From assembly GCA_021613535.1 (NCBI GenBank), contig CP075495.1:3534001-3598000 (forward strand): DNA of 64,000 nt, given 5' to 3'. This document shows, piece by piece, positions 20,912 through 26,550 of this stretch (position 1 is the stretch's first letter; every line of letters starts with the position of its first letter). This stretch comes from Adineta vaga. Its lineage: Eukaryota > Animalia > Rotifera. Position numbers and translations under genes: made by a program. The notes below the pieces were generated by a model. That model was not told the origin of the DNA and searched no databases. It saw nothing but the letters and a program-made list of their open reading frames with translations.

Positions 20912-21034
20912 CGGAAGTAAAAAAATGATCAGGTAACCGAATTTCGTAATTTTGGTATTACTTATGAAAGAATAAAGATTAATAAATAAATATTGATCAT
21001 ATATATATGTGTGTTTATTTTACTGACTCAATAG
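20912..21034 (+). promoter_or_regulatory. Putative promoter/5'UTR of the PARG-headed cluster: ETS-like CGGAAGT plus a 5'UTR intron
   Basis: CGGAAGT at 20912-20918; donor ag|gtaacc at 20933; acceptor tcaatag at 21034; ATG at 21046. Confidence 0.3.
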
Positions 21035-21045
21035 TAAATTTCAAT

Positions 21046-22484
21046 ATGGCATCTGGATATCAACGAAACCGGAGACAAAATCGTTCAATTGCAGCACCCT
21101 TTGGTCTTCAAGTTCCATCATCATTACGAGATCCAAAAGACACGTCCTTTTCAGAGGTAGAAATAATACGTTTATCTACCGATGATGGTGCACGTGATTT
21201 TGCACTTAAACATTTACATAATCATGAACAATTTGCTGAATTATGGAATTCGACAAGAATTCGACCAAATACACGGCGTTGGATGCGTAAAGTTGTGCAA
21301 ATACAAACTATCAATGCAATCTACAATAGGTAAAAATGAGAAGATTTAGATTGCTGTTTTTTTTAAATATTATTCTCTATAGTTTCTATCGACTTCCTGA
21401 TGGTACAAAAGTACATTTAGATAAACAAAGAATGACTCAAGCTGCTCAAAGTACTAAACGATATCAAAACGAACATGGGTATAAAACAACTATTCATGAT
21501 AAACCTTCATCTCGAATATTTGTTGTTAATGGTGATTGTCTTGATGTTGCTGTATTATTTAAAATTCAATTTCCTCGATCAAATCCTGTTGTACTAAATA
21601 TGGCTTCATCAAGGAAGCCTGGTGGTGGTTGGAAAAATGGTTTGTTGACTTTTGATTGCACTTTCATTCATATACATTCTTCGTTTTGCTTGTATTTAGG
21701 TGCTGGTGCACAAGAAGAAAATCTTCACCGTCGTACTAACATGTGTCAATGTCTTGAAGATCCATATCATGAATTAGATGGTCATCGACATTGGGACTAT
21801 CATGTACCCGAAGTAAGCTGATGCATAGATTTATAAAGAATTTGAAATACTAAAGTTTTTCTTTTAGTTTGGTGGAATTTATTCTTCCAATGTGAGTGTT
21901 TTTCGTGGTTCAGAAACAAATGGTTATCCATTTTTCCCTGATGGTCCGAAATATCTTTCCTTTATTGCATGTGCTGCTTATTCTCATCCACCAACTGAAA
22001 CCGATCAAACTGGACAATTGAAATTAAGTGGTAAAAATATAATTGAAAATACCAAGAAGAAAATGGCGACTATCTGCAATATTGCATTAGAAAATAATCA
22101 CGATATTCTAATTTTATCAGCTATGGGATGGTAAGTAGTCAATACAAATCATTTGTATTCTAAAGTGACGATGAATTGATGAATTTGTTTATTTATTTAG
22201 TGGTGCTTTTCAAAATCCACCAACACATATTGGTAAATTCTTTGTTTTCTTTGATATATATTTGTATAAATGAACGATCGTTGTTTTTCTTCATTCTAGC
22301 ACAATTATTTCGTGACGTGATCTCGCAAAATTATAGTGACTCATTTCAATACATCGTATTTGCGATCATCGACGATCATAATTCTAATAAAGATCATAAT
22401 CCTACGGGCAATATTCAACCATTTGGTGAAGTTTTTAAAACACCTATTCTATCTATTGATGAACTTCAACAATCACTTTCATAA
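21046..22484 (+). CDS. Microbial-type poly(ADP-ribose) glycohydrolase (TIGR02452/DUF2263 macrodomain), intron-containing
   Basis: VVNGDCLD, VLNMASSRKPGGGWKNG|AGAQEENLHRRTN (GGG-x-QEE catalytic loop), GGIYSSNVSVFR, FIACAA, LILSAMGC|GAFQNPP, IVFAIIDD. Confidence 0.9.
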
Positions 22485-22552
22485 TTAAACGAATAAATCC
22501 ATCAATTTTTCTATTGTTTTTTTTCTTCTGTTCCAGATAAATAAAACTTAAA

Positions 22553-23292
22553 ATGTCATCAGCATTTACTGAACTTCTTCGTAAATCAAATCTAGATTTT
22601 ATTGTTACACAAAAAATATCGAAACTTGGATCACGAACCGATGAGATTATCATTGCGACATTCATTGATATGAACATAAAAAAATTACAAGTAAACAATC
22701 ACGATTTTAGAGAGAAAAAAACCGTAAAATTCAAACCATGATTTTTCTTTAGTTAGTTGCATGTTTAGATCAATTCGATTCATCTACAATTTGGTCCACA
22801 TCATTAGATGAACGTACATTTCAATTAAATGCTCGTCTTTTAGATCTAACTGAACTTAGTGATACGATGTTATTTCTTTCCGAACGTTTGACTGAATCAG
22901 ATTTTACATTGAGTAGATCCAATAATAAAACAGAAAGTTCACAACTGAACATCACATTTATACATTCGAAAACGAAACAATCGATTACTCTTCATCTCGA
23001 TGAATGTCTTGATGAAAAAGAAAAAATATTCTTTCTTAGTAAAATTCTTTCACATATTTATAAACGTAATCAACAATTATCAACAGAAGTGAAACAACAA
23101 GAATTACAAATTAAAGAATTATCAACAAATCGAATATCGGATAATAAGACTAAATTAATTCAATCTACAAATGATAATAAAAACATTCCGATGAAATCAA
23201 AAGAACGTACACAAATGAGTTTGATTAATCCAAGTACAAAACGACGTAAAGCAGCAACCGGTATTAATTATGATGATGACGATAGTGATTAA
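22553..23292 (+). CDS. PAXX: PAXX-like (XRCC4/XLF paralog) NHEJ factor
   Basis: Two exons (22553-22690, 22753-23292). Head-like region, then a coiled coil (NQQLSTEVKQQELQIKEL). The C-terminus SLINPSTKRRKAATGINYDD resembles the PAXX Ku-binding tail (human SLINPGFKSKKPAGGVDFDE, from memory). Confidence 0.75.
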
Positions 23293-23408
23293 ATATTTTT
23301 GTATATATTTTTTAATAATGAATAAAAGACAAATTTGTTTTGAAAGATTTTAATAAAAAAGAAAAAGAAAAAGAAATAATTCTTTCGTACTTCTTATAGA
23401 TAATCAAA

Positions 23409-25181
23409 ATGAGTAAACCTTCGGGACCAGATACAAAACAAATTCAATATGATCGTCAACTTCGTCTTTGGGGTGATCATGGACAAAAAGCTTTAGAATC
23501 TGGTCGAGTTTGTTTAATTGGTGCTAATGCTTTAGGTACAGAAATTCTCAAAGCACTTGTTCTACCTGGTCTTGGCTCATTTACAATCATTGATCATCAA
23601 TTAGTTACATTAGCTGATTGTGGTTCGAATTTTTTCGTTCATCCTTCAATGATCGATCAATCACGTGCTCAAGTAACCTGTGAATTATTAAAACAACTTA
23701 ATCCTGATGTACATGGAACATTCATTGATAAACCAACGATTGATGATTTATTAAGACAAAATACATTCGATTTTTCTCAATTTAATGTTGTTATCACTGC
23801 TAATCTTTCACATAAGATACTGATAAATCTTGCCAATCATCTTTGGACATTGAGAGTACCTCTACTCGTTGCACGTACCTATGGGTAATTGAAAGAAAAT
23901 CAAAGACAAAATCATCTTTTCCATTTCTTTATTGTATAGGTTTATTGGTACTATTCGTCTTCAGTTAGTTGAAAATTTCATTATTGAAGCACATCCTGAT
24001 GATACAATTCCTGATCTTCGTCTTGATCGTCCATTGAAATCTTTTCTTGATCATTGTAATTCAATTGATTTTCAAAATCTAACACGTGAAGAACATCTAC
24101 ATCTTCCATCATTAATTATTTTATTCAAAGCTCTACAACAATGGCAAAAACAAACCAATCGAACCGATTTACCACGAATTCGCAAAGAAAAAGATGAATT
24201 TAAACAAATTCTCGACAATTTTTCACATCATTCAGCTTATGAAACAAATGATTCGAATCGAATTCTTGAAAATTTTGAAGAAGCAAAACGAACAATTCCA
24301 TCACGATTAGTTTCTACAACGATTCCATCAACTGTCAAAGAATTATTTCAAGATCGTGAATGTCTAGAATTATCGAATCAATCACATATTTTTTGGTTTA
24401 TTCTTCGTGCTATAAAATTATTTACAGAAAATGAAGGTCAAGGTCTATTACCTGTTCGCGGTGAAGTACCGGATATGATAACAAATACAAATTCATATGT
24501 GAAATTAGTTGAAATCTATCAAGAACAAGCAAAAAAAGATTGTGAAATGATTTATAATTATTTAGTGGATTTATTAAAAAAACATAATCGATTTTCTAAT
24601 GAACAAGCTATTTTACATGATTTAGTTCATATCTATTGTAAAAATGCATCATTTTTACGTGTTCTAAGAACATCACCAATGAAAACTGAAGATGAATTAT
24701 TACAAAAATATTTGGAACAAAATCCAATGGATTCATCACCGGATGAGCCTGAACCAGATATTTGTTGGTAAGATACAAAAATGTGTTTTTTTTAATTCAA
24801 ATTTTTCACCTTCTTTTCAGGTATATTGGTCTACGTGTATGTGATTCATTCTATGACAAATTCAATCGTTATCCAGGAGAATTTCCTCTTTCCATCAATG
24901 AAATGGATACAGATCAACGACAATTAGAAATCGATATAAATGATTTGAAACAAATTGGAAAACAAATGATTCAATTAGATCAACAACAAGGTTCTATTCG
25001 TGAAAATATTCTCGAAGAATTAACACGTTATGGTGCATCAGAACTTCATTCGATTTCAGCATTTATCGGCGGATGTTGTGCACAAGAAGCGATTAAATTA
25101 ATAACACATCAATATGTACCAATTGATAATGTTTTAGTTTATAGTGGTATTCGACAAGCGACAAGTGTTTTCAAAATTTAA
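23409..25181 (+). CDS. NAE1: NEDD8-activating enzyme E1 regulatory subunit (APP-BP1)
   Basis: YDRQLRLWGDHGQKALE, GTEILKALVLPGLGSFTIID, DLRLDRP, GLLPVRGEVPDM, RYGASELHSISAFIGGCCAQEAIKLITHQYVP. Three exons. Confidence 0.96.
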
Positions 25182-25867: not shown

Positions 25868-26550
25868 ATGTCATCATCAAACATATATTCACTTCATTAT
25901 TTTAATGGTCGAGGCCGTGCTGAAGCAGTTCGATTAATTTTTGTCCAGGCCGGTGAAAAATTCGAAGATCTTCGTCATAGTCCTGACGAATGGGCAAAAT
26001 TAAAAGGTCAAATGCCCTTAGGTCAAATGCCTGTATTAGGTATAAAATCTCTCGTGTAAAATTTCTAGTTTTCATTTTATATATTTTTTGCCTAGAAATT
26101 AACGGTGAAAAATATCCACAATCAGCATCAATTGCACGTTACGTTGCACGACAATTTAAACTTGCCGGTAAAGATGATCTTGAATCTCTTAAATGTGATA
26201 TTATTGTTGATACGATGCAAGAAATTAATGAAGCATATTATGAAGCATGGTTTCATATTAAAGATGAAAAACGAAAAGAATCGGAACAAGCAAAATTTAA
26301 AACTGATTTATTACCTCAAAAATTAAAAGGTCTTGAAACTATGATGAATACCTATGGAAATGGTACATGGGCTGTTGGTAGCAATGTAACATGGGCAGAT
26401 TTGTTAGTATATGATTCCATACAAAACATTCTTCGAATTGATGAACAAGCATTAGATAAATATGCAACTTTGAAGAAAAATCATGAAGCTGTTGAAAAAT
26501 TACCAAAAATTGCCGGATATTTAGCAGAACGAAAACCAACACCATTTTAA
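25868..26550 (+). CDS. Glutathione S-transferase, sigma-like class
   Basis: [25 protein letters not shown]|[18 protein letters not shown]. Two exons. Confidence 0.95.

Follow-up and report, generated by a model that had tools for sequence, protein, structure and literature searches.

Three co-oriented genes on chromosome 2 of the bdelloid rotifer Adineta vaga, encoding a microbial-type PARG, a PAXX-like protein and NAE1 (APPBP1, the regulatory subunit of the NEDD8-activating enzyme), occupy positions 21046-25181 of the 64-kb window analyzed here (the window being the whole stretch of DNA under study, taken from an assembly of 100.8 Mb in six contigs). All three lie on the forward (+) strand and are separated by only 68 and 116 nt. 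On balance, PARG and PAXX, and in Adineta probably also NAE1, are likely to form an operon of the spliced-leader (SL) type. The PARG-PAXX pair is a strong candidate for an operon, backed by a single line of RNA evidence, an assembled contig from a wild bdelloid in which part of PARG is joined to the whole of PAXX; NAE1 is a probable third member in Adineta.

The spacers and their splice acceptors

The spacer between PARG and PAXX (spacer 1, 22485..22552, + strand, 68 nt) contains AATAAA at 22492-22497, a pyrimidine tract at 22514-22534 and an AG at 22535-22536. From this AG a 16-nt PAXX leader extends to the ATG, with stop codons in all three reading frames and a second AATAAA at 22540. Because of the leader stops, the acceptor is unable to serve a fusion protein in A. 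vaga, and a PARG-PAXX fusion as the product of this locus is thereby ruled out. The spacer between PAXX and NAE1 (spacer 2, 23293..23408, + strand, 116 nt) is built along the same lines, with AATAAA at 23321 and 23352, a pyrimidine tract, an AG at 23398-23399 and a 9-nt leader.

The first-pass annotation of this DNA had placed three co-oriented genes here, 68 and 116 nt apart, with an AATAAA in each spacer (at 22492 and 23321) and a pyrimidine tract with AG 16 and 9 nt before the next ATG; every one of these positions is confirmed. It had also held that spacer 1 lacks a credible splice donor, and the only GT dinucleotides in that spacer, at 22516 and 22530, are indeed neither of them credible; spacer 2 has no credible donor either. 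Its description of the layout as operon-like is supported by these spacers and by the gene order that is kept among relatives, as set out below. A crude scan of the window picked up four junctions of this kind, of which two are intron-like; spacers 1 and 2 are therefore the only apparently intergenic ones in the window.

Gene order among bdelloid rotifers

The relatives compared were the A. vaga ohnologue of the locus, A. ricciae, A. steineri, Rotaria sp. Silwood2, R. socialis, Didymodactylos carnosus and contigs from wild bdelloids. Conservation of gene order had been named beforehand as a test of the operon proposal, and the order PARG-PAXX-NAE1 is kept in all bdelloids examined, including every sampled bdelloid family. 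The A. vaga ohnologue, on chromosome 5, has the three genes in this order too, the exons being 52-73% identical at the protein level, with 37 nt between PARG and PAXX and 182 nt between PAXX and NAE1. The corresponding pairs of distances are 39 and 102 nt in A. ricciae, 92 and 291 nt in A. steineri, 90 and 2757 nt in Rotaria sp. Silwood2, 69 and 686 nt in R. socialis, and 703 nt and about 1.5 kb in Didymodactylos carnosus; wild bdelloid contigs that reach both junctions have 38-92 nt and 107-202 nt. The PARG-PAXX pair is the firmly held unit, and the tie to NAE1 is looser. The PAXX-NAE1 spacer measures 102-202 nt in most lineages, but NAE1 can lie as far as 2757 nt from PAXX, which weakens the view of NAE1 as a fixed member of the cluster. 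The 703-nt gap between PARG and PAXX in Didymodactylos implies that tight packing is either not ancestral or not obligatory.

The position of the splice acceptor is kept along with the order of the genes. The 16 distinct PARG-PAXX spacers are 37-92 nt long and their sequence is largely turned over; a pyrimidine tract with a YAG/AT acceptor 7-33 nt before the PAXX ATG is seen by eye in every one of them (16/16). A strict acceptor test was also applied, in which the last AG must be no more than 35 nt from the ATG, preceded by at least six pyrimidines in nine nucleotides and followed by AT. Eleven of the 16 PARG-PAXX spacers pass it, against 0.69 expected from shuffled sequences, as do eight of nine PAXX-NAE1 spacers (0.36 expected from shuffles). 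The poly(A) signal is less regular in its placement: in several lineages it overlaps the PARG stop codon, and some have a signal after the acceptor. An AATAAA past the acceptor, within the PAXX leader, is present in the window (22540-22545), in the A. vaga ohnologue (L007) and in contigs L039, L032 and L034. Were this leader hexamer the poly(A) signal of PARG, cleavage would fall inside PAXX, and a given precursor would yield either message and not both.

Two relatives show the pair in altered form. The public annotation of Didymodactylos merges PARG and PAXX as one 622-aa product (P0191; L042:7580-8436) by means of a splice to the acceptor before the PAXX ATG (8436) from a weak donor that lies four codons short of the real PARG stop (L042 7732), so that the fused product bypasses the genuine PARG stop codon. 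Merged gene models are a common annotation error for operonic genes (PMC7986045), and the Didymodactylos fusion is probably an artifact of this typical sort. In one wild bdelloid (L032:900-1165) a decayed PARG, consisting of pieces of exons 1 and 2 joined to the C-terminal tail and interrupted by stops, lies upstream of an intact PAXX, before which the acceptor is kept; a dead PARG as transcribed spacer would fit a shared upstream promoter.

An RNA that joins PARG to PAXX

The RNA support comes from L008, an assembled contig of 1015 nt from a wild bdelloid relative (JGI sample 3300030741). It contains the full-length PAXX frame without the intron that is found in every genomic copy. Upstream of it is a 61-codon frame that comprises the end of PARG exon 2, exon 3 and 24 nt from the start of exon 4; the two introns between these exons, common to all genomic copies, are missing. 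Because three introns of all genomic copies are missing, the contig is derived from RNA. Its 24 nt of PARG exon 4 are followed directly by a 14-nt PAXX leader and the ATG. The break directly precedes the site homologous to GTGAGT in PARG exon 4 of the window (21892..21897, + strand; GTAAGT in the ohnologue), and it directly follows the position of the acceptor AG in the nearest genomic relatives. Both halves of L008 have a counterpart of ~90% identity in a single genomic contig, L039, the two counterparts being ~580 nt apart; since that one contig matches both, L008 is not a chimera of two species.

We read the junction as a cis-splice that uses a cryptic exonic donor in PARG and the acceptor of PAXX. 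The donor is not conserved, the corresponding sequence being GTCAGC in A. ricciae and ATAAGT in contig L030, so that the splice looks opportunistic; a conserved alternative donor in PARG exon 4 was considered and rejected, because the codons vary among lineages. What the junction does imply is that one pre-mRNA spans PARG and PAXX in the wild relative, and that the AG ahead of PAXX functions as a 3' splice site that has no regular cis partner.

At its downstream end L008 continues for at least 46 nt beyond the PAXX AATAAA and is untailed. This is the only extension towards NAE1, and it fits read-through in that direction. Searches for further RNA-derived contigs returned, for full-length PAXX, clusters consisting only of genome annotations, apart from P0022; for NAE1 exon 1, only genomic matches (L040 keeps the intron); and, for the truncated PARG frame of L008, only contig L046, which has nothing after its PARG stop.

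Spliced-leader RNA genes

The 23-nt rotifer SL sequence (PMC3795323), extended by GT and with up to two mismatches allowed, was searched for in the A. vaga genome, with the reversed sequence as control. There are 58 matches to the SL exon followed by GT and none for the control, which upholds the earlier statement that this organism uses a spliced leader. The SL RNA genes are on contigs C1, C2, C4, C5 and C6, mainly contig 5 (e.g., C5:9884354-9925971), and many of them form back-to-back pairs ~156 nt apart. With 58 such genes, a donor for an unpaired acceptor is abundant. Several sequencing runs that are probably RNA data sets contain 0.47-0.59 of the words sampled.

A putative operon and competing explanations

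In the operon proposed here, transcription would start upstream of PARG and run through PAXX and, in Adineta, probably through NAE1. The PARG message would end at an AAUAAA located at or just past its stop codon, and the unpaired 3' splice site before each downstream ATG would receive the 23-nt rotifer SL; trans-splicing would in this way supply the capped 5' ends of the PAXX and NAE1 messages. Three parts of this scheme we infer: that the SL is the usual donor at the PAXX and NAE1 acceptors, that the cluster has no internal promoter, and that A. vaga behaves as its wild relative does.

A number of observations weigh against the scheme. The RNA support is one assembled contig, from a species other than A. 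vaga; the metatranscriptome nature of its sample is deduced from the missing introns and not from the record, and the splice that it displays is cis, not trans. The canonical AATAAA is absent from several of the short spacers. PAXX and NAE1 are not close together everywhere (A. steineri, 291 nt; R. socialis, 686 nt; Rotaria sp. Silwood2, 2757 nt), and the PARG-PAXX gap of Didymodactylos is 703 nt.

It is accordingly worth asking what else would account for the cluster. The three genes might be separate units, with the promoters of PAXX and NAE1 placed inside the 3' part of the upstream gene, short outrons removed by SL splicing, and the overlap itself keeping the genes adjacent. An acceptor near the ATG is expected for SL-spliced monocistronic genes as well, the NAE1 acceptor is kept even where 0.3-2.7 kb separate it from PAXX, and in Didymodactylos there are 703 nt ahead of PAXX. 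This arrangement is nonetheless unlikely: the L008 RNA starts at least in PARG exon 2 and holds the whole of PAXX, and where the gap is 37-40 nt there is no spacer left to hold a promoter. The same RNA lends itself to another explanation, according to which one promoter combined with alternative cis-splicing, from a PARG donor to the PAXX or NAE1 acceptor, yields working downstream messages, as at the cholinergic locus. L008 is an RNA cis-spliced in just this way, and the annotation of Didymodactylos likewise joins PARG to the PAXX acceptor. That this is how the downstream genes are expressed is improbable, however, in view of a donor that is not the same in A. ricciae (GTCAGC) or L030 (ATAAGT), of an upstream PARG frame in L008 that ends 5 nt before the PAXX ATG, which makes a poor context for translation, and of the finding of no conserved non-coding first exon in the PARG upstream regions of the relatives.

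A further account would be chance adjacency, inherited from the bdelloid ancestor, overlaid with read-through noise and devoid of regulatory meaning. Genes are densely packed in bdelloid genomes, no transcriptome is free of read-through and cryptic splicing, and ohnologues would keep gene order by descent alone. Set against this are the survival of gene order and acceptor position in ~16 diverged spacers whose other sequence has turned over, and the 11 of 16 spacers that pass the strict acceptor test with 0.69 expected. Rotifer chromosomal linkage groups are scrambled (PMC12460157), which makes passive retention less likely, and we regard chance adjacency as very improbable.

Comparison with known operons

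SL-resolved operons are known in nematodes, tunicates, flatworms and chaetognaths. C. elegans has SL2-type operons with ~100-nt spacers and, more rarely, SL1-type operons without a spacer. The rotifer cluster is like those of C. elegans in its co-oriented genes, in the succession of AAUAAA and acceptor, and in an order that is kept among relatives; its spacers of about 70-120 nt are also like those of the SL2 type (about 100 nt). It is unlike them in that bdelloids have one SL family and no specialized SL2 (PMC2481426). Tunicate operons (Ciona, Oikopleura) resemble it in having one type of SL, very little sequence between cistrons and a poly(A) signal near the acceptor; median intercistronic distances in tunicates are 1 to about 57 nt (PMC7986045). 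The rotifer spacers (37-116 nt) are nevertheless longer than the tunicate distance of about 1 nt, and the joining of the SL is, in the rotifer, what we infer. Taken together, a spacing of 37-92 nt and a poly(A) signal near the acceptor would place the cluster closer to the operons of tunicates and the SL1 type of nematodes than to the SL2 type, it being the closeness of signal and acceptor that makes for an SL1- or tunicate-like layout (PMC7986045).

The chaetognath Paraspadella gotoi provides a gnathiferan with both trans-splicing and operons, the latter defined by a distance of under 250 bp between genes and by the presence of SL reads (PMC12460157). The difference is one of evidence: SL read counts are genome-wide there, whereas here there is one bridging RNA contig. 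The cholinergic locus (ChAT/VAChT; unc-17/cha-1) has a single promoter for two proteins, whose messages arise when an upstream exon common to both is cis-spliced alternatively. The cis-splice from PARG to the PAXX acceptor in L008 is reminiscent of it, but the rotifer donor is cryptic, exonic and not conserved, and no shared non-coding exon was found. No operon has been reported for Rotifera (PMC7986045), for which operons are listed as not determined (PMC2481426), and literature searches on bdelloid or Adineta operons and spliced leaders found no paper documenting a rotifer operon. What is new here is the trio PARG-PAXX-NAE1 together with the bridging RNA; to judge by the literature searched, a rotifer operon is so far unpublished.

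Gene models and protein identities

Homology searches were run exon by exon, and spliced protein models were translated locally. All introns of the three genes are GT..AG and 53-70 nt long. The identities proposed in the first-pass annotation (a microbial-type PARG, a PAXX-like protein and NAE1) are all upheld.

PARG (21046..22484, + strand, 377 aa) has six exons (21046-21329, 21383-21639, 21700-21812, 21868-22130, 22201-22232 and 22300-22484) and five spliceosomal introns. Exon 2 matches PF10021, the microbial-type PARG family, with 48.8 bits against a cut-off of 23.5 (E 1.2e-12), exon 3 extends the match (E 0.003), and full-length bdelloid homologues score 76-99 bits. In the local translation of the spliced model a GGG-X7-QEE signature straddles the join of exons 2 and 3; the catalytic signature of PF10021 we take to be GGG-X6-8-QEE. 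A GCGAFQNP loop is also found in the translation. Ahead of the gene is a candidate 5'UTR intron or outron, read from the sequence (20933..21034, + strand), with a donor-like CAG/GTAACC, a branch-like CTGAC and then an AG 11 nt before the ATG. Its form varies among relatives, and no conserved or uniform acceptor was found ahead of the PARG ATG across their PARG upstream regions.

The PAXX-like gene (22553..23292, + strand, 225 aa; exons 22553-22690 and 22753-23292) encodes a protein of the same length as A. vaga NCBI I4U23_006875 (P0001), with which exon 2 is 100% identical and the full model agrees by eye in alignment. Its own score against the PAXX family PF15384, 21.6-22.1 bits, falls just short of the cut-off (25 bits); among the bdelloid homologues, 23 of 26 match PF15384 at E <= 0.001 (best 1e-7). 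A profile of the family finds only two matches among solved chains, and both are PAXX Ku-binding peptides (9gyf_C and 8asc_J), which align over the C-terminal SLINP...GV.YD tail. The weakness of their E-values (0.19 and 0.37) is due to the shortness of the chains, 23-28 residues. The predicted structure, examined for the XRCC4-type head domain and coiled-coil stalk of PAXX, is of low confidence (mean pLDDT, the predicted local distance difference test score, 54.5), and the top Foldseek matches of this low-confidence model are mostly XRCC4, Arabidopsis PAXX and SAS-6, with E 4e-3 to 5e-2. Identification as PAXX-like rests on the family matches of the homologues and on the C-terminal Ku-binding motif.

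NAE1 (23409..25181, + strand) has three exons (23409-23884, 23940-24767 and 24821-25181). Exon 1 matches ThiF with 66.7 bits, homologues are named NAE1 or APPBP1 by JGI, NCBI and UniRef, insect and sea-urchin proteins are 50-55% identical, and the length of 554 aa falls in the NAE1 range of ~530-560 aa.

Origin of the PARG gene

PARG exon 2 was compared with 1.84 billion protein representatives. The best matches are rotifer proteins; the next relatives, at ~36-44% identity, include named members from Heterolobosea, Amoebozoa (Cavostelium, Copromyxa, Stenamoeba and Balamuthia) and pandoraviruses, and no bacterial protein was named among the relatives looked up. A bacterial origin, considered as a candidate, is unsupported, the nearest named non-rotifer relatives being amoebozoan, heterolobosean and pandoraviral. 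The first-pass annotation had spoken of a foreign-type enzyme. The microbial-type family assignment holds, but the foreignness is weakened, since the nearest named relatives outside rotifers are not bacterial and transfer is only possible. To judge by these relationships, the gene may have been transferred from a eukaryotic microbe or a giant virus, and it may also be an ancient gene that was retained; a foreign origin would be a presumption about the rotifer gene.

Two other PF10021-related sequences were encountered. In a 1465-aa protein (P0126), 16 separate stretches match residues 20-68 of PARG exon 2, and the protein appears to be a repeat protein made of this piece of the PARG domain. 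Contig L046 (JGI 3300030564, 1228 nt) has a PF10021 gene that is more distant, with ~62% identity over 61 residues, and that is called as three frames because of a run of A and an apparent retained intron; the latter is at the same exon 3/4 position as in bdelloid PARG.

Functional implications

PARG removes poly(ADP-ribose), PAXX binds Ku, and neddylation promotes the release of Ku. It is on general knowledge of this kind that a joint action of PARG, PAXX and NAE1 at DNA breaks would rest, and operons elsewhere often hold unrelated genes. One may nevertheless speculate that the cluster has been a co-regulated double-strand-break module since the bdelloid ancestor, in which a single transcript supplies a PAR-removing enzyme, a Ku-binding scaffold and a neddylation subunit that helps Ku release, that the PARG came from a giant virus or an amoeba-like source and was placed in front of PAXX, and that the functional tie aids recovery from desiccation and radiation; such a module is, in our estimation, unlikely. 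Literature searches found no paper tying PAXX or a microbial-type PARG to bdelloids.

The interest of the locus lies in a case that is conserved across all sampled bdelloid families and that comes with RNA-level evidence of co-transcription for PARG and PAXX, and in a gene content that bears on how bdelloids survive massive DNA breakage. If the operon is real, the loss of one promoter should lower two or three repair-related messages together.

The downstream neighbor

A gene for a sigma-class-like glutathione S-transferase follows at 25868-26550 of the window, on the same strand, 687 nt past the NAE1 stop codon. A glutathione S-transferase also follows NAE1 in A. steineri and Rotaria sp. (L009, L045); in the other type of ohnologue (A. 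ricciae, R. socialis) a SUEL-lectin gene follows NAE1 instead.

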